From contig RHPI01002090.1 in assembly GCA_009103225.1 (NCBI GenBank), positions 122,625 through 186,624 on the forward strand: a stretch of DNA of 64,000 nt. The letters are read 5' to 3'. Position numbers and translations under genes: made by a program. The notes below the pieces were generated by a model. That model made no database searches, was not told the origin of the DNA, and worked only from the letters and a program-made list of their open reading frames with translations. Every line of letters begins with the position of its first letter. The first letter of the stretch is position 1. This DNA comes from Chlorokybus atmophyticus. Its lineage: Eukaryota > Plantae > Mesostigma and Chlorokybus algae. Positions 10,652-31,096 of this stretch are shown piece by piece.

Positions 10652-13261
10652 GGCGGCGCAATGCTTTAGTTATCTTAACTATGTGAAGAATACCGCCAGC
10701 TTCGCCAGCGCCACCGCCGCCGCAGACAACAGCAATGTTGTCCGCCACGTGTAAAGTGTCGTGCGATCTGTACCTGCAATGCCGTGAAGCCACGGCGACA
10801 ACGTCGGCGGATGGGAATAATAGATACCTGTGTGTCAACCGCCGACTGTGCAACGCACCTCTTCTGCAGTGTCACGCACAGAAGCGCTCATGATGCAAGT
10901 CACGTAAAGGATGTAGAATAGGGGCAAAGCAAAATGCAGCATGCAAACAGACTCGAGCCATGGCCATTGTAAAAGCATAGACTTGAACTGAACTGTACTC
11001 CACACAATTCAACGAACAGCGCTGAGCTAATGGGCTTGCTTTCTCATGCAATGCAATAGCAGTTGGAAGGAGCAGAGGATTGCTGACTGCACGGCGCCTC
11101 CCATCAACACCTTAGGCGTAGCAAAGAGTGTCTTTGCTAAAGACAACACAAGCATGTATGGTTGTGATCATTACTCATATTTATAAGTCACAGTATTGTG
11201 AGTTAATACATGGGCTCGTTGAGCAATGCATATAACAGTAAAGCAAGTGTTCGTGTTGGGCGTATGATATACATTTCCTTCGCAACTCTTATAATGCTTT
11301 CCCCACAGACGGCTTGGCATGCGTGTCATTATCATGGAGTCGAGCGAGCAAGAAAGCAATCATCGTGCTACTAGTTCACATCATATTGTTGTATCACACT
11401 ATGTGGCAGCCACAGTGTCCGGTTGCCCATGGCTGCTGGCTCGCTGTGGTACTCTTTGCGTATGTGAGCCCCTAAACTACTTCAACTTGGATTTGCTGTT
11501 CGATGCGGCTGAGGGGCCCAGCGCATCATACTTGCTCTCTTTACCATTGTTGCTTGCTTGCATACTGCCTTGTTTTCACAATAACCTGTCCACTGTGCAC
11601 TGCAGCTGCCTAGCAATACGACCAAGTGTTGTCATGCCATATTCCGTTGCTTGAGGTTGTCATCCACGAGCGCGTTATGGCCTCGTAATGCTGCACCTTC
11701 TCCACCTTCACACGTTGTAGCTTCCTCCATGCATCCATGCTAGCTCGGGATCCTTGCGAAGCTGCCCCACGAGTGTACATACTCACACGCATAATGTGAC
11801 ACTCACAGAAAGTTGAGCATAAGTAACAAGCGCGTGTCTTAGCCAACCTAGACTCAAGCACGGGCTGTTACACTTGCAATTGTCATGTAATGCACGGGGA
11901 GACGAGGCTAAGTCCGTTCACAAGGTGTGGCAGACGCTCACTTCACACAAGCATATCCAAGCATGTGCGCACTCAAGGCAAGCATGCAGCAAGGCGACAA
12001 TCAATCAAGTCGTGAAGCCTTTCCAAGTAGCTGTACACTCCCAATACGAGGGACTTGCGCTGAGCTAGCTGCAACACAAGTCAAGGACACCGACATACCC
12101 TCCTACCATATATCTACAACCGTGTTAACCACTTTAGCTGCCCCAGCTACCATACAACTCCCAGATCAGTCAACCATCGATTTTCAGTCACATGTGAACA
12201 TAGTAGCACGATACGGCATCAGAGGAATTCTGATACCGTATTATATGCGTACCAACAAGCGGTATTTAAGACGCGTATTTAGCGTATTTGTTGGGGTGTT
12301 TTGCCTTAGAAAAATTTGTGCAAAATCCGCGCGTTTGCTGAGCTCTGTTCTGGTGCCACTCTGATCTAGCGGCGGCGGCGGCGGCGGCAAGGGGAGGGTA
12401 GGCGTCGCGGTTACAGGAGCGACACACCAGCACGCGCCAGGTGACCTTAAGCTATGATCTAGCATACTTCCTATGCTCTCTCACACAAGTCTCTCTCAAC
12501 CGGTGCGCTGGTTGTTAGCTGCTTGTCTCTTGGCTAAGGCCATGCTCCTGCAGGGCATGGCCTCGGCCTAAAGACAAGCCGATGAATGGCGTCACGTCAA
12601 AGAGCTTGACGAGTCAAGCAAGATAACAAATCAGTCCAAAGTTGCATTTACTGCAAGAAGAGGTTCCAAGGGGGTGTTACTAGAATTCGTGCACACCTGA
12701 TTGGCAAGACGGGTGTTGGAGTATTTGCTTGCACGACTGCACCAGAAGCTGTTCGTGCTCATTTCCAAAAGTTGAAGAAGCGTCTGTTGCTGTGCTGCAA
12801 GCAACACAGAAGAAGCGCACTATCTCTGATGTGTTCAACCAGAAGAGTGCCACTGTCGACTTGACAACTGACAGCACCAGAGTAGCACCCATTGGGCAGG
12901 CATTCGGCCATGCAAGTAAAGCACGCACTGATGAGGCAGTTGCTCGCATGATTTACGGTTGTGGTTTGCCTTTCACTCTTGTGCGCAGCCGTTTGTTCAA
13001 GACTGCCATGCAAGCTGTCACTAGATTTGGACGTTCATACACTGTACCAGCATACAATGCATTGCGTTCAGGCTTGCTTGCGAGGGTCAAGACTGATGTT
13101 GATGGAAAGTTGGCAGAGTTTGAGGACAATGTGCGCAAGACTGGTTGTACAATAACTAGTGTTGGCTGAACTGATGTCAATAGTAGGCCATTGCTGAATC
13201 TATTGCAAGTGTCGCCTAATGGAGCAGTGTTTTTGGACGCAATCAACACCGAAGGTGCAAC

Positions 13262-18244: not shown

Positions 18245-21200
18245 CTACCTAGTCTGCGTGACACCAGCAAACAACGAAGCCTCCTTATCAGAAGCACTGC
18301 TTGAGCTGGGGGTGGAGGTATCGCTGGTATCACTGGAGCTGCTGCCGCACTGTGCCTGAAAGCCAGCCACCGCGCCGCCACTGGTATGGACGGCAGCCAT
18401 GGTCTCTTGAGGAGACGGATTCTGATTCAAGTCTGGGATGTGAGCTGGGGCTGAGCTCGTGCCTGTCTCATTGCGTATGCCGGACCCGCGCAGACTCCCG
18501 TCATGGTCGGAACCGTGTCTCGCGTTTTCACCGGGCCGGTTGCGGCTAGGGCTGTGATCCCTCTCGTTCCACCTGTGGTCGCTTCCCTGGTGGTAGTGTC
18601 TATCTCGCTCCCTTTGCCTGTCGTACTGCCGATCCCTGTAGTAGCGATCCTGTTCGCGATCCCAGTCGCGTTCTCTTTCACGATCGCGATCGCGATCCCC
18701 GGTGCTGCGCAGACGGTCCCGCTCGTGGCCATCACGATCCCTACCCGAGGGCGGGCCGGGCCTTCTATCATAATCCTTGTAGCCTCCACGTTTGTCCTGA
18801 TGAGGGCTGTGATGATAGCCTTCCCGCTTGCGCACCCGGTCGCTGTTGTGCCTGTGGTCGTAGTAATGGCGATCGCCTTGTCGATCACTGGACGAGTACT
18901 TTCGCGCGTCGCGCTCGTTCCCGTAACCGCGATGACTGCCGCTTGCTTGCCACTGCTGCTTGCGCGGCGTGCTGTAGTACCTGTCGTCGGCCCCTTTACG
19001 TGCATCACCGCGCCAGCTGTCGTTGCGCCGCGACTCGCTGTGTTCACGCGACCACGGTTGGTCGCTGTTGTTATGTTGGGGATGGCTGGCTCGCGAAGGC
19101 GCCTGATCGTCACTCCGCACCTCTTGCAGATGTTGGCTGTCTTCACGAACCGGCGCAGAGCTGCGCTCTTCTCTGTTCGACAACGCTCCTGACACATTGC
19201 TGTGACTTCGCGACATGGCCGCATCATGCTGCCTCTCCCTGCTGCGGTCTTCCACACCGGTAGAGAAGCGCACGCCCGTATCAACTTGCGCTTCATTTGG
19301 AGGCGCATCGCGCACAAGTTCCTCATCCACATCAGCAGCTGCGACGGCTGCCACAGGAGCCACCTCAGGCGGTTCCAGGTTGAGGTCTGGGATGGATGGC
19401 CGGCCCGATGCTGTGCCGTCATCAACGGCACCTTCTGCATTGGCAGCCACTGCAGCTGGCGTTGCACCCGAGTGCGAGGGCTCGCGGACAAAACTTGTCG
19501 GCTCACTGAGAGGCTGCGATTGTGAGGCGGGCGGTGGAGGTGGTGGCACTGAAGGCAAAGGTGGTTGTTCTGGTGCAGACGGCACTGTCGGCAGCGGCGT
19601 CAACGGCGGTGGAGGAACATCGTTATCTACATGGGGCCTGAGTACCAAACACAGCGTTACACAAGCGCAAAGAAAAAGGACCTTATTGTCCAAGACAACC
19701 AATTTTGACTTTGACGCACCTCGTTGATGGCTCTGCAGAAGCACGAGCGTGAGGTGATGCCACAGCTAGTGCCTGGACACCAATAAGGTTTAATATACGT
19801 CACGAGCGCATTACAACAGCTGTGATGTCCGCGAGGATGTTGCTGAGACTAAACTTGCCTGTGGAGAAGGCCCTGATACCACCGCAGGTGTTGCAGATGG
19901 GGACCCGGCATCCTCAAGAACTGCAGCCTTCTCATGCATCAGCTGCATCAACTTCGTAACTTGCTCTGCGCTCAGCTTTTGGTCGAACAGCTCCTCCCCC
20001 ACACTCGCATCAGGCTTATATGTAACCACACGGCGAAACTCTGACAGCCGGATAGGCTCAAAGTGCTGAACTTGCTTCACACGCACTTGTGCTGGATATG
20101 CCGTGAGCGCGCCATCAGGACCTCTGGAGACTAGCGCATTGGGCTGCAGGTTCATGCCACCACGCGCAGTGCATTCGTACACTGGTATGAAAGCAACATC
20201 AGCACATGCACAAAATCGCACACAACGCTTACCGCCAGATTGACAGCCTGCATAATGCTCGGGAATGGTGCACATCATGTACCGCAGAATGCAGCAATAC
20301 TTGTGCATGACCAGCATGCCAATTTTTACATTGAAGTGCCTACCTCCATATAGGTAGCGGCTCTGCGTGTTGTACAGAAACAGCGCGGTGGCCCTATCGA
20401 TCTCGTCTATAATGGGCATCAACGCCTCCTTCTCGCCAAACAGCATGTGCTTAAAGCACGCGTCCATCGTGTCCCCCTCGCACCGGAAAACAAATCCTTC
20501 ACGGTACTGCACCCAGAGCGGAACTGGCAAGTGTAGACCTGTGGCAGCCTGCGGCAGCATTGGAGTCACTGGCTTGCTGTGAGGCTGGCGACCTCTGTAC
20601 TTCATCTTGAAATCTTCGTAAGTGTAATGCGTTTTCTGTGACATGGCTGTTGGTTCCCTTCCAGCAGAGCCATTGGCAACTGGTGCCTGACCAGACAACT
20701 TGATTGGGGAAGCTGGAAGCCGCTCGCGTTCGCGGTGACTTGGGTATCTCTCTCTGCACAGTGACATCATCAGGTTGCGTGATGCTACCAGAAACTTGTT
20801 AGGTCCACAGAGAGATGGAAGTGTGTGTCATGCACACGCAAGATAGAGCCCCAACTGTGCATAAAAGTTTAACTGTTGCATACCTTGGTTGACGGGGACT
20901 ACTAGCAGGAGTGCTGTGGTGCAACCTGGCTGCTGTCGAAGGAGGTGCTGCGCTGCGGTCAGCTAATTCCACGGCAGAGTTGGCTAGCGCATCTAAGCTG
21001 CCATTACTCATGCTGCGGACTGTCATGGCTGGTGCGCCAGGGGCTGCTGACAGCGCAGATCTGCAGTGAACAACACTAAGCTCAGTGCATTAAAGTCATG
21101 ACGAAGCCCGCGAATACTTGCCCTGCAGCAAAAGTAAACCAGCTGTACCTGCGAGGTATCCTGAAACTTTGGGGGCGGTCATTATTTACAGTGGACTGTA

Positions 21201-24200
21201 CGGTTCGGCCGTCAGCCTGTGCGCGGCTGTCAGGCTCTGGTGCGTCGGGTTGTGATGGTGGCTGCGGTGTCAAGTTTTTGGGACCTGTTGTAGTGCTTGG
21301 CTCTGCTGGTGACAACTCTAGGTGCGGCTCTTTTCGCTTGAAACGAGGGTATTGAATCTGATCCGCGGCCCGAGGTTGGCTGACATCCGCAGATATGTCT
21401 CCAGGAGCCGCGCTTCTAGCTATCTTAGCTTTCTTAGCTTGCTGGCGTTCTTCTTGACTTGGCAAGTCATCTAGGCGACGTTTGATACTTCCAGGCACGC
21501 TCTTGGGTGAGGATTTTTCAACATGTTCGGGCCCTTTCGCAGCGGCTTTCTTGTGCTCTGTGGCATGCTTGTTCGCGGATGCGTCTTTGGGAGAAGGTTT
21601 TACCTTGGACGACTTCAGCGCCTGTCACAATGCGGTATCAATACCAACGTTGCGCAAATGGCCACAGTGGCCACACTACACACGAGTCAACATCAGGCTT
21701 ACCAGCGGAGCGATTGTCTCAATATACGTGCGTGCACCATGAATCTCCGCCTCGCTGTACGAGGCGAGATCAAAGTTGAGTCTATCTGCCTTTTCCTTTC
21801 CATGCAGCGCCAACATGGCCGTGTCAAATGCCCGTGCTGCCACTTCAGGTCGCACATAACTACCCAAGTATATCTGGTTCGTACTGACCGGGTTGCGAAT
21901 CTGTTGAAAAGCAACACATGTGTGAGCGGTGTTACAGTTACAAAGAGCAACAAGCCTGTGATAGCTTCATTCATCAACACTGATCAACAAGGTGCTTGCC
22001 TGAGCACGAAACTTGCCCTGTCCCCGCTGCCCGACTCCACGCCACCCTTTGTCACTCTCTTTGGACTTCTCACCACGGTGTACGGGCTTGGGCGGCTCAT
22101 CAAAGGAATCCCACACTGACTGTAGCACTACTGAAAAGCGCCGCCTGGCTGCTGCCGCTGCACCCTCAGCGGCTACAACCGCGTCTGCAGTCGCTGCCTC
22201 AGCAGGTACGTGGTTGACCACGTTTGCAACTGCAAGCACGCACAAGTTAACATTGGGTTGTGTCGTTTCGAGCGACGGTAGTAAGGGCAACGACGATGTC
22301 TTTTGGCAGCACCTTCGACACCAGGCAGCTGTTCCAGTGAACATATCTCCTTCGTTTCCAAGAGCACTGCTCTACTGTAGAATAGCTCAGGATCTTGGTC
22401 CTCCTCTTCAAGACGGGGATTGCGAGAGTCCTCCCATGTGCAGTTGACTGTACACCTCTTCAACACAGCATCCTGTGCATAGCATAAGCAATGCCGCCAA
22501 AATGAGCGAGCCGTGCATCTCTTCATCAACTCCCCATCAGCAAAAAGTTGCATTAGACATACCAATGGTCTCTCCTCAACACGATCACTAAGAAACAACT
22601 CTTCCGCGCCACCTTTGTTCTCAGTAGGCACATCGATGCCCAACCTATCCAACTCAGGCTTCCGACAAAAGAAGCGCCCCTGAACGCGCAGATTACGGCA
22701 CACTGTGTATGCTTGACACATGTCATCAAACATGCATTACAGGTGTTTGTTGCGCTGTACCCACCTTAAACATCATTTCCTTATTGGGCGTCTCAAACAA
22801 TGCAACCAGCTTGGCAACCTCTGGAGGCTGTTAGCATGTGCCAGTGTATCAGTTTGCACACAAGCAGAGTGAGACCTTGCTTTCTCCGAGCAGCTTGCTG
22901 ACAGTGACTTGCCTGGCCGTCAACTTCAGTGCGCAGCTGAATGCACTCTCGCACGTATATCTCTCTATTGTTTATAAACATAGACCGGTAGTACTGCCGG
23001 TTATTGTGCTTGTTCTTCCACTTCTGTCCCCAAGAATGGGTGACAAGAGTCTCAGAGCTCACACTCTCATCCATGAGGCGAACATGCTCATGGGGTATTC
23101 GTGTCTCTTCAACTTCATCATCCTGCATGCACAGTCAACCCAAAGCGCAGCGTCAGGACACGAGTACAAGCATACATTCCATGCAGTCGTTGCATACTAT
23201 GGCATGCTGATGTACATGGCTGTGAAGTGGAGGAAAGACGGGCACAGACACAGAGTCACGATGCAAGATCAGGTCAACATGCGTGAAAGCTGCCCTGAAA
23301 TACTTCAAGTCTGCCTTCACTCATTTTCACCAACTAAGCTCGAACAGCAGCGCACCTCGTAAAAGATGGTGAACAGCTGCGTGCTGGGGTTGTAAGCTGC
23401 TATTGTGCCTGGGTACCATTCGTTGTCATCGATCCAGAAGATCTCAACCTTCCGGGCGATGAGGGAAGCAGGATCACTGAGCGATCCCCCGCTGCTGCTG
23501 CGCGGGCGCTGTTTGCTACGCTGCCGTCGCACCACAGCCTTCTGAGGCTCGGCACCGTCCGGGGACTGCAGATCCGGCTCATCCGCACTTCCAGCTGGCA
23601 CGAGCGGCTCCTCATCGTCAGAATCTGGCTCAGAGGCTGCTGCCGCTGCTTCCGGCACACCAACCTCTATCTGCAGCTTCTTCTTCTCAGGTGGTTGATC
23701 CCTGCTTGTCGGCATGCCGGAAGCCAACCACTCGTCGTACGCGCCTTTCACTAAGCAGAACCCGCCACCCTGAATCCTGACCCTCTCAAATGGCGCGCCC
23801 GCACGGCTGAGCACGGAGTTGACATCATTGTGCGGCCTTAGGCAGGACTTTGAGAAGCTGTACAGGTCCATCTCCTTCACTTTGCTGACTATTTCTTTGA
23901 GGGTCAGGCGCTGGCCCGGGCCAGCCAACACCAGCACAACGCAGCAAGCGCGAACCAGCTGTTCATCGCTGCACGTGCGCTCAGCAAACGCAAAAGCACG
24001 CTGGAGCGCTTGGTCCTGTTCTACCCCCCGCGGCTCCGACTCCTTGACCTGCACTTCCTCCACAACATGGGGCTCGACGTGCTCCTCCTCCATGTGCTCA
24101 AGCAAGGCTGCGTCGTCGTCAAGCTTGGTGGCATCTGACTTAAATACGGGCTCCACGCCAAAGTTGGGGTCGTCAACCTCGTCCATCCACTCTTCCCACT

Positions 24201-24357
24201 CCTCGCGTGCATCCTGATTCCCTCCACCATCTTCCTCAGCTCGTTCACTTCCTGCAGGTGCTTCTGGCTCCGCGACATCAGCGCTGCGTGAGGCCAACGC
24301 GCCCTCTATGGCAGGCTCGGCCTTTTCCGCCATGGGAGGCTCGTCCTCCTCCATCAT
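18245..24357 (-). CDS. Large multi-domain chromatin/transcription protein: HARE-HTH + Tudor + BAH + AP2 + DCD + Arg/Asp-rich tail (about 13 exons, roughly 1,600 aa)
   Basis: HARE-HTH-like LVRACCVVLVLAGPGQRLTLKEIVSKVKEMDLYSF...FERVRIQGGGFCL. Tudor LIARKVEIFWIDDNEWYPGTIAAYNPSTQLFTIFYE|DDEVEE. BAH YYRSMFINNREIYVRECIQL...EVAKLVALFE...EELFLSDRVEERPL|DAVLKRCTV. AP2 WRGVGQRGQGKFRAQ|IRNP...IYLGSY..PEVAARAFDTAMLALHG...LNF. DCD GFVFRCEGDTMDACFKHMLFG...LFLYNTQSRYLYG|VYECTARGGMNLQP...YPAQVRV. All junctions were traced in phase, including a 53-bp exon at 19720-19772. Confidence 0.8.
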
Positions 24358-27300
24358 GACCGCTGCTACCTGCCATGCCACGGTGCAAGAACCTGAATGC
24401 AACAGCATGTTGCAGTGCGCTTGGATATGCAGCGCATGGACCCCTTGTAAAGATACAATGCTCTGTGCCCTTGCTAAAAGATCACCTGGTAAACAAGGTT
24501 TACATTTGGCTAGCTACATGTTCTTCAACATCTATTAAGGCATCAACAAAACATCAGTCAGTGCGTCAGTGATGTGAATTGACGTACTGAGTTGCTATGC
24601 CTATGTAGAGAATGTGTCTGGCATTCGATCCAAAGAACGGAACAAACCAAGTGCTAACTACCTACGGGATAGGCAGTTGGCACTGGTAAAGCACTTAAAC
24701 AAAAACGACCACAAACGCTGTCACCCGGAATCATCGACAGTCTTGTACAATCGTTGCAACTTACGTAACACGCAGGCAGCACACAGATACCTCGTATGCA
24801 GCAACCAGGCTACGAATTGCCCTACACATTTACCGCAGTAAGGGGGATCTGTTGCGCTGAAACTTACCAGCTGAACAGGAGACACGGCGTATGTGCTGAG
24901 CAGCCAACGTAGCACACCGCTAACCAGGCCAACATATACGCGACACTACTGTTGGTTTAGGCACTGCTTAGGTAGTACTATGATTTAACAGCAAGTTCAC
25001 CCCTTGCATTAGGGCAGCATCAAAGTGCTGCTGTGCTTGCCACACAAAGCAGCATTTGCCAGCCATGGTACAAAAACGAGCATGTCGGTATCATACTAAC
25101 AGCTCTGCCAGCTAGGTGTCAAACCGGAGTACAACCCAACATGAAGTGTAGTATACGCTGGGTTTCGTTTAAAGCGCATGCAACTGTTGGCGCTTATTTT
25201 GTTAATAGATTGTATACTTTAGAAACACGTTGAAGCAACAGTACACGTCAATGCATTGTGCGCGGCATACCTATGTGCTGTCAGCGGCAACAGCGCTGCA
25301 CAAAACCGCCTCATTCAAACACCCGCGAAAACCACAGCATGCCCTGCCTGCGAACCAAACTTGCACAAACACTATGTCTGCAGCCTGCAGTCCAGACTAC
25401 ATCCCGGCGATGCCGTCCACACACCGTCGACAACGCCAGCGACGCCACCACCGCCGCCGCCGTCGCCGCCAGCGGCCCACCACCGCCACCAACACCCCGT
25501 TTTTGTTTTCCGCTTTCCAGCAAAATCCCGGACCGCTTTCCGCCTGCGAGCGCCTTTTCTTTTCAAGGATTCAGGCTTTCGTTTGAACGACAATCATAAG
25601 TCGCGAAATTGCAATCAGAGGCTTGCTTGGTGCTTGCTGTTAGGGTTTCTGTCGCAATTTTCTTACACGAACACAACGCAAGATTCCGAATGTCCGGCTG
25701 GGCCGGTGTCGAACTTCCTGCGACAACAGAACTCTTGCTGGTCCGACGGCCGGTCATGGTGGGAATAGTCGTCAGTTCTCAAGTGTCAATTTGCCGGACA
25801 GAATGACAGACTTGTTCGGCCAATACAAATCAAGGCTGACGTCAAATCAGCCCAACGGCAGAAGTTTGGAAGACCACGTGGGCGCAACCTCTGTATGTGC
25901 CCCGGTACAGTGTAAAGAGAAACATACCGTACTTACGTGTGCTCTCAAGAGCATGCGCATTCGTAACTATGCTACACATTGCGTAGTACACGCTTGCTTT
26001 TGTGACACTTTAATTCACACGCTTTCACTAACAAAACACACAGCTTGTACCTTGTTCGCTCAATACTTATATGTAGTCATTGAGATATTACTGCCCCAAT
26101 CTGTATACACTTGTATATATTTGAGTTGCAATCCGCATCCATTACATATTGTGACAATAAATGCGTAGTTGCAAACGGCAATAATATAGCCGTCTTGCAT
26201 TGTAACGTATTGATACCTGATTAACGCAGCCGTGTTCACTTGATTATGCTTGATTGATCACGTAACATTACTGTTCCTCTATTAACAACCGAGTAGTTTA
26301 GATGTAACTGCTACAGTATCAAACAATTGTAACTGATATCAACATATTGTAAGCGACATAAACTAAGTTCGCCTGGTATACATACATGTATCATACCACT
26401 ACATGTTGGTATGCAAACCAAGGTTGCCAATCAAGTTGCCATCTTATGACATTCAGTGTAGGGAAAGTCACGCATCGCTGTGTGAAAGCCAAGGGGAGGT
26501 GCATCTGCTGGCTCTTAAGTTATGCGCTATAGTTGAAAAAGCGTGCAGGTGTGGCCAGCAGCAGCACTATTCACAAAAATGTGGAAAATGAAGCTAGATT
26601 AAGAGCTGGCGGTAAGAGAAGAGGGTGGGGGTGGGGTGTCATGCGTACCGTGTATGCAATGCATTGCGCAATTTGTGCATAGCGGTGCGTTCCCCTATGT
26701 GGGGCACGTGGCTACCTATTGAGTGATGAGACCACCACTCTCACCACTCACTCTACCACCTGCGTACAAAAGAGACATAGGAGGTTATGCACATGCAGGT
26801 ATGCATGAGTACAAAAGATGCAAGGTGGATCAGGATGCCGCCATTCAGCAACAGTAACATATCATCAACCTGCAGCACATGTAAAACCACCGGGCTAAGA
26901 CACGCGCTTGCATGCTGCCCACCCGCTACCACCAACCCTACCATCATAGCTAATGCCCCATTGTGCATATGGGCGTGCATGGGGTGCACGTACGTATACA
27001 AAAGGTATTTGCTACAGTTTTGCCAACACTATTACATGCACCACTCTTAGAGCTTGCTTTACCGCAACTCTTGTGTACTATGCATCAATGCGGCAGTTGC
27101 ATTTTCAGTGCGTACAGGAAATGCAACTGAGGTATGCGCATGTGTTTTACTGGAGTTGTGCCTGCACAACAGACTGCAAGGTAAGAACTACCGTCCCAAC
27201 TGCTGTTGTGGTGGTGTTCTGTTGCACACCTATTCAATGGCCACCATGCAAATGCAATCACCCTTGTTAGCCCATAATCCCAGGTGCCATAAAGTCATTG

Positions 27301-27530: not shown

Positions 27531-31096
<3,566 letters not shown>

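Follow-up and report, generated by a model that had tools for sequence, protein, structure and literature searches.

We have analysed a 64,000-nucleotide stretch of the Chlorokybus atmophyticus genome (contig RHPI01002090.1, positions 122,625 to 186,624; hereafter the window) and have found on its minus strand a 13-exon gene whose predicted product carries, in this order, HARE-HTH-like, Tudor, BAH, AP2-like and DCD domains. Our database searches found this combination nowhere else, and we regard it as a new arrangement of known domains and so far a singleton. We propose, with a probability of roughly one half, that a single nuclear Chlorokybus gene encodes here a large multivalent reader or adaptor, and not a classical transcription factor. 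The DCD domain is certain and is predicted to adopt the fold of YTH- and EVE-type proteins, and the Tudor domain, though below its Pfam threshold, keeps the whole cage of a known histone reader.

Results

A 13-exon gene on the minus strand

From 24357 down to 18245, the 13 exons join in phase with no stop and give 4797 nt, that is, 1599 codons, which are followed by a TAG at 18247-18245. The introns are 81–233 bp long. The minus strand of this region holds open frames of 398, 113, 187, 134, 96, 180, 96, 338 and 506 codons, and those of 398, 180, 338 and 506 codons are far beyond chance length at a G+C content of ~52%. A database protein of 1598 residues (P0001; EukProt EP00898, JGI model Chrsp26S08841 of Chlorokybus atmophyticus) maps on the window in 14 exact blocks between 24357 and 18248, and exon 1 and the last ten exons match such blocks letter for letter. 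The model thus agrees with an earlier reading of the same DNA (the original prediction), which had described about 13 exons in phase, one open reading frame of roughly 1,600 residues and the five domain families in the above order. All five domains lie inside the ranges then assigned to them, with uneven strength, since DCD alone exceeds its curated Pfam threshold. The 53-bp exon 12, likewise foreseen and also present in P0001, is needed because phase 0 must pass to phase 2 for the last exon. Overall, the analysis confirms what the original prediction had observed.

Two further features of the reading frame were observed. An in-frame ATG lies at 24408, 51 nt upstream of the annotated start, and the same frame is stop-free to 24513; this would be an alternative start, so that 24357 and 24408 are both candidate start codons. 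In addition, the last exon is overlapped by two long open frames (18430-19599, minus strand, 390 codons; 18503-19192, plus strand, 229 codons), which are probably a product of the biased Arg/Asp/Ser/Pro-rich composition and not separate genes.

The model could also be an annotation chimera, in which a HARE-HTH/Tudor/BAH/AP2 gene and a gene for DCD and the Arg/Asp-rich tail have been fused via low-complexity linker exons. In favour of this, the gene model has been derived from genomic DNA, no other protein in our searches shares its architecture, and the public model contains demonstrable errors at other junctions. Retention of intron 8 would moreover lead to a stop at 21084-21082, with an ATG at 21026. 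However, only 56 bp separate this stop from this ATG, too little for a 3' end and a promoter, while all acceptors are canonical, the phases are consistent and the intron sizes are typical of the gene. Between the AP2 and DCD exons, a second promoter would find no space, as the three introns here measure 81, 88 and 130 bp and open frames of 180 and 96 codons contain the linker exons. We consider a chimera improbable and proceed with a single gene.

A singleton architecture

Similarity searches were run exon by exon or with P0001, the database's own product. When the DCD-bearing open frame was compared by HMMER with 1.84 billion representatives, one near-identical protein was found, namely P0001 itself (E = 1.2e-148); the next DCD match follows at E = 1e-11, with just 119 proteins at or below E = 0.001. 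We scanned 116 of these 119 relatives with Pfam and have found Kelch, NYN, an MTPAP-like nucleotidyltransferase or nothing beside DCD. None of the 116 carries AP2, BAH, Tudor or HARE-HTH in addition to DCD, and none shows similarity to P0001 outside this domain.

Word searches with P0001 residues 120-1110 against long proteins, with residues 560-655 (the AP2 region), and with residues 120-334 of exon 1 against proteins of 184-585 residues returned P0001 itself or nothing. Since such searches need shared 5-mers and cover limited length ranges, leaving out proteins of ~585-880 residues that carry only the N-terminal domains, they are no proof of absence. The metagenome scan yielded no relative. 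Within these searches, the earlier statement that no described protein has this combination holds.

Among the relatives, two fall outside the classical DCD subgroups and are linked to RNA: in P0048 (Kingdonia uniflora) DCD is fused to an NYN RNase domain, and in P0113 (Riccia sorocarpa) to an MTPAP-like poly(A)-polymerase/nucleotidyltransferase.

The DCD domain adopts a predicted YTH/EVE-like fold

By its profile match we regard the identity of the DCD domain as certain: PF10539 scores 99 bits (E = 2.2e-28) on P0001 and 83.8 bits on the genomic open frame, where the Pfam gathering cut-off is 27.8 bits. In an alignment of 108 DCD sequences, it retains every invariant and near-invariant column. 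As for the motifs of the family (Tenhaken 2005), LFL and PAQV are exact, FGLP is cut to FG, and PLxE can be recognised only approximately. The domain thus belongs to the same family as the DCD of the plant proteins B2, Gda1, NRP and Kelch-DCD, with which it shares LFL, PAQV and the near-invariant columns. In contrast to this common core, its identity to the plant proteins is 25–41% and the similarity ends at the domain border. In the relatives, DCD is joined to Kelch, ParB, NYN, a nucleotidyltransferase or no other domain at all, and a chromatin- or DNA-binding partner is never seen.

An AlphaFold2 model of the domain, built on the 108-sequence alignment, reached a predicted local distance difference test (pLDDT) score of 81.6; when the in-frame intron inside the domain was read through, the inserted part came out disordered. 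This intron (20343-20182) is 162 bp long and stop-free, and if it were retained, the central loop would gain 54 residues. Foldseek returned 26 PDB matches for the model at E <= 0.001, consisting of YTH domains and archaeal EVE-like proteins, such as YTHDF2, YTHDC1, AtCPSF30, Mmi1, PH1033 and MJECL36, with template-modelling scores of 0.60–0.66 on the target. The likeness to these modified-base readers is one of fold, whereas the sequence identity to YTH is only 6–13%. Bell, Wolf and Koonin (2020) had placed DCD with PUA/EVE/YTH-like folds by HHpred, and our model-based comparison confirms their inference at the level of predicted structure; what the original prediction had stated on the DCD fold was therefore right.

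The same authors described CPSF30-YTH-DCD fusions in heterokonts and eTudor-DCD fusions in choanoflagellates (Bell, Wolf and Koonin 2020), which provide a precedent for DCD being joined to RNA-processing proteins and to a Tudor-type domain. The Chlorokybus protein differs from the latter in that its Tudor is a histone-type single Tudor and not an extended Tudor.

A Tudor domain with a conserved cage and a divergent BAH domain

The Tudor domain is matched by the Pfam family PTM_DIR17_Tudor (PF21743) with 18.1 bits and E = 0.0023 on P0001, below the cut-off of 27.2 bits. Its alignment with the RDM15 Tudor in the PDB (7DE9) is ungapped, with 13.8 bits and E = 0.08. The published cage by which RDM15/PDS5C reads histone H3 mono-methylated at lysine 4 (H3K4me1) consists of W616, Y623 and Y641 together with D643, D645 and E647. 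The counterparts here are W308, Y315 and Y333 with D335, E337 and E339; that is, D645 is replaced by Glu, and the three aromatics, D643 and E647 are kept. As the motif straddles the junction of exons 1 and 2, it also supports that splice. On the other hand, the overall match to RDM15/PDS5C is weak, the PDS5/cohesin-regulator part is absent, and the protein context is wholly different.

For the BAH domain, PF01426 gives 26.1 bits (E = 8.4e-6; cut-off 30.8) over residues 399-472 of P0001, in which the N-terminal strands are mis-spliced, and BAH is listed among the precomputed Pfam domains of this protein. A PDB search with the exon-2 piece for the N-terminus of BAH found no match. The best solved relative is the AIPP3 BAH (7CCE, E = 0.12), a reader of H3 tri-methylated at lysine 27 (H3K27me3) through a cage of Y149, W170 and Y172 with H198 and D200. 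In the Chlorokybus protein these three aromatics correspond to a non-aromatic residue, Phe and Cys, and H198 and D200 to Arg and Glu. Judging from these residues, this is probably a BAH domain, but not an AIPP3-type H3K27me3 reader: it shares the fold family of the AIPP3, EBS and SHL domains but lacks the residues that define the readers. The original prediction had let both Tudor and BAH read methyl-lysine or nucleosomes. This is weakened for BAH, from which the H3K27me3-type aromatic cage and the His/Asp pair are missing.

Intron 4 (22473-22562, minus strand) is in frame and stop-free, and its translation weakly matches a part of the PHD finger of ASH1L (E = 0.26). We judged this a chance match, because two zinc ligands are missing and the alignment with the AIPP3 BAH crosses the splice directly.

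Candidate DNA-binding domains and low-complexity regions

The exon at 21900-21703 alone (66 residues) has four matches in the PDB, all of which are AP2/ERF chains: both repeats of WRI1 (7WQ5, E = 1.9e-6), then ERF096 and AtERF1. The full domain aligns with residues 1-61 of the 63 residues of AtERF1 (1GCC, E = 0.11), so that both the exon of strand 3 and the helix and the full domain length are common to this region and AP2/ERF proteins. W154 of AtERF1, which we take to be a base-contact residue of the AP2 sheet, is Gln here. Four residues of AtERF1 are cited for binding of the GCC box, namely R150, R152, R170 and W172; the second is identical here, and the others are replaced by Gly, Gln and Tyr, respectively. 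In contrast to AP2/ERF proteins, the Pfam AP2 model (PF00847) is silent, with no match at E <= 10 in P0001 or in the separate exons. From these comparisons the region is best described as a divergent AP2-like domain. The AP2/ERF similarity of the original prediction is retained, but sequence-specific DNA binding is insecure with two of the four GCC-box residues of AtERF1 lost, and a sequence-specific transcription factor appears to be the weakest part of the earlier interpretation.

It might still be argued that the protein is mainly such an AP2/ERF-type transcription factor, whose reader domains only modulate its action. The exclusive match of the AP2-like exon to AP2/ERF structures and the full length of the domain against AtERF1 are in line with this, and the acidic N-terminus could serve as an activation region. 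The silence of the Pfam AP2 model and the identity at R152 only speak against it, and we regard this explanation as unlikely compared with a multivalent reader or adaptor.

The HARE-HTH-like stretch lies wholly inside exon 1. PF05066 matches it over profile positions 9-61 of 71 with 19.4 bits (E = 0.0014) in a 111-residue piece, and with 14.2 bits on P0001, where the cut-off is 25.9 bits; no other Pfam family matches residues 142-193. A single-sequence AlphaFold2 model of the piece is poor (pLDDT 43), shows the H-H-H-beta-beta order of a winged helix, and has winged-helix domains as its best fold matches throughout, all of them non-significant (E >= 0.1). These data are suggestive of a HARE-HTH domain, which would be related to those of ASXL1, plant HB1 and restriction-associated proteins through a sub-threshold match. 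The earlier assignment thus survives as the only family that Pfam offers for this stretch, although below the gathering cut-off. Sensing of N6-methyladenine (6mA) in DNA has been proposed for the family and demonstrated in one study.

Outside the domains, the protein starts with an acidic region, contains in an Ala/Pro/Ser-rich linker exon a pattern that may be a bipartite nuclear localisation signal, and has an Arg/Asp-rich tail (Table 1). The tail matches the RD repeats of NELF-E with E = 0.014 and high bias. Pfam scans of single AP2, BAH and Tudor exon pieces were of no use, as these domains are divided between exons, and the NCBIfam search gave no matches.

GC-AG introns and errors of the public model

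Three donors of the gene are GC donors, all with the sequence CAG/GCAAG (the slash marks the junction), at 22913/22912, 22000/21999 and 19859/19858. The original prediction had pointed to three GC-AG junctions, and with them the model is in phase and stop-free. Because of the GC donors a dinoflagellate source was considered, but it was given up with the assignment of the protein to Chlorokybus. Each has an in-frame GT alternative, and Chrsp26S08841 departs from the 13-exon model exactly at these three donors. At the first one (22985-22828), the public model has two introns, of 49 and 48 bp, which flank a 61-bp filler exon read out of frame, and this filler takes the place of the first BAH strands. 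At the second one, the public GT donor puts seven extra residues (21979-21999) into the AP2 sheet; since the gap in the AtERF1 alignment falls exactly on these seven residues, homology favours the GC donor at 21999. At intron 11, the GC and GT choices are both in phase and homology decides for neither. The differences at 22828-22985 and 21979-21999 look like artefacts of a GC-blind predictor.

We have also counted the octamer CAGGCAAG in the window and have found 12 copies where 4.1 are expected, a number that none of 100 shuffles reaches; CAGGTAAG is less frequent, with 3 copies. This excess fits frequent GC donors in the Chlorokybus genome and suggests that GC-AG introns may be common in it. 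The other CAGGCAAG sites, compared with the ends of long open frames, do not differ from random positions, and in the literature we have found nothing on the gene identifier Chrsp26S08841 or on GC-AG splicing in Chlorokybus. At this locus the public Chlorokybus model is mis-spliced at probable GC-AG donors, a point of importance for domain annotation in the genome.

Feature coordinates and neighbouring genes

The coordinates of the gene and its parts are collected in Table 1. The same-strand upstream neighbour, at ~27795-30127 (minus strand), is a DEAH-box helicase gene, whose DEAD, HA2 winged-helix, HA2 ratchet and OB_NTP_bind pieces are found in separate open frames. At 12684-13166 (plus strand) there is a weak match to DUF659 (E = 0.0018, below the cut-off). 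DUF659 is linked to hAT-type transposases, and the match may be a transposon remnant. In the gene region, neither Rfam families nor notable tandem repeats were found.

Table 1 Features of the five-domain gene in the window (residue numbers refer to the protein)
Feature	Coordinates	Strand	Residues	Remarks
Whole coding region	18245..24357	minus		Described by phases, stop count, intron sizes and exact-match blocks to P0001
Exons 1-5	24357-23356, 23122-22913, 22818-22765, 22679-22563, 22472-22313	minus		GC-AG-aware model
Exons 6-9	22229-22000, 21900-21703, 21621-21149, 21060-20884	minus		GC-AG-aware model
Exons 10-13	20753-20344, 20181-19859, 19772-19720, 19637-18248	minus		GC-AG-aware model
Exon 12	19720..19772	minus		53 bp; present in P0001
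Intron 2, GC-AG	22819..22912	minus		94 bp; in-frame GT-AG alternative 22908-22821, 88 bp, two more residues
Intron 6, GC-AG	21901..21999	minus		99 bp; public model with GT donor 21 nt further on
Intron 11, GC-AG	19773..19858	minus		86 bp; public model with in-phase GT donor at 19879, seven residues fewer
Acidic N-terminal region	23968..24357	minus	1-130	22% Glu, 9% Asp
HARE-HTH-like winged helix	23779..23934	minus	142-193	Wholly inside exon 1
Tudor	23054..23478	minus	294-357	Split by intron 1 (23355-23123)
BAH	22344..22993	minus		Last part of exon 2, then exons 3, 4 and 5
AP2-like	21766..22050	minus	574-642 (P0001)	Split by intron 6
Possible bipartite nuclear localisation signal	21424..21483	minus	710-729	Pattern match in Ala/Pro/Ser-rich linker exon
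DCD	19940..20497	minus	966-1097	Split by 162-bp intron 20343-20182
Arg/Asp-rich tail	18482..19141	minus	1301-1520	20% Arg, 15% Asp, 37 RD/DR/RE/ER dipeptides

Discussion

Based on the above analyses, we can outline how a multivalent reader or adaptor of this kind might work. The Tudor domain would dock the protein on chromatin of the mono-methylated H3K4 type, and BAH would contact the nucleosome or a partner protein, not methyl-lysine. The AP2-like and HARE-HTH-like modules might make further contacts with DNA, with a specificity that is low or altered, and the putative pocket of DCD would bind a modified base in a nucleic acid at the same site. For this ligand, nascent RNA seems more likely than DNA because streptophyte relatives have an NYN RNase or a poly(A)-polymerase-like domain as the partner of DCD, which is elsewhere found in CPSF30-YTH fusions; DNA would be a candidate as well, and 6mA in DNA has been connected with the HARE-HTH family. 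Finally, the Arg/Asp-rich tail may recruit RNA-processing or elongation factors. Everything past the domain anatomy, including the single transcript and the binding activities, is what we infer. In particular, we consider it possible, if doubtful, that DCD acts here as a chromatin-tethered modified-base reader coupled to an H3K4me1-type Tudor and DNA-binding modules.

Several observations weigh against the multivalent reader or adaptor. No orthologue exists in the searched collections, hence there is no sign of conservation or selection; four of the five domains stay below the curated Pfam thresholds; the NELF-E match of the tail is a low-complexity one; and the ligands of DCD, Tudor and HARE-HTH are putative here. 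The weight of the finding is also limited because the protein is a singleton whose gene model has been derived from genomic DNA only. It is hardly probable, however, that the gene arose recently in this lineage by domain shuffling and has hardly any selected function or none, as its singleton status among 1.84 billion representatives and in the word and metagenome searches and the diverged functional residues of AP2 and BAH might suggest, since 13 exons are open and in phase across 4.8 kb and the protein retains every conserved DCD column as well as the whole Tudor cage. Overall, the earlier interpretation stands for the gene model, the domain families, the DCD fold and the unmatched architecture, but is weakened in its claims on BAH, AP2 and HARE-HTH.

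In plants, the DCD domain is known only through 'development and cell death' phenotypes, and the reading of modified bases by DCD has so far been proposed from profile similarity and prokaryotic gene context. The combination of DCD with a histone-reading-type Tudor, a BAH and two modules of DNA-binding type, in one of the earliest-diverging streptophyte algae, provides contextual evidence that DCD may work on nuclear nucleic acids. The protein also offers a concrete case in which this idea can be examined. If chromatin-tethered reading by DCD is true, the protein would be the first natural fusion in which DCD is tied to the reading of histones, and would suggest that reading nucleic-acid modifications was the ancestral function of DCD in streptophytes.

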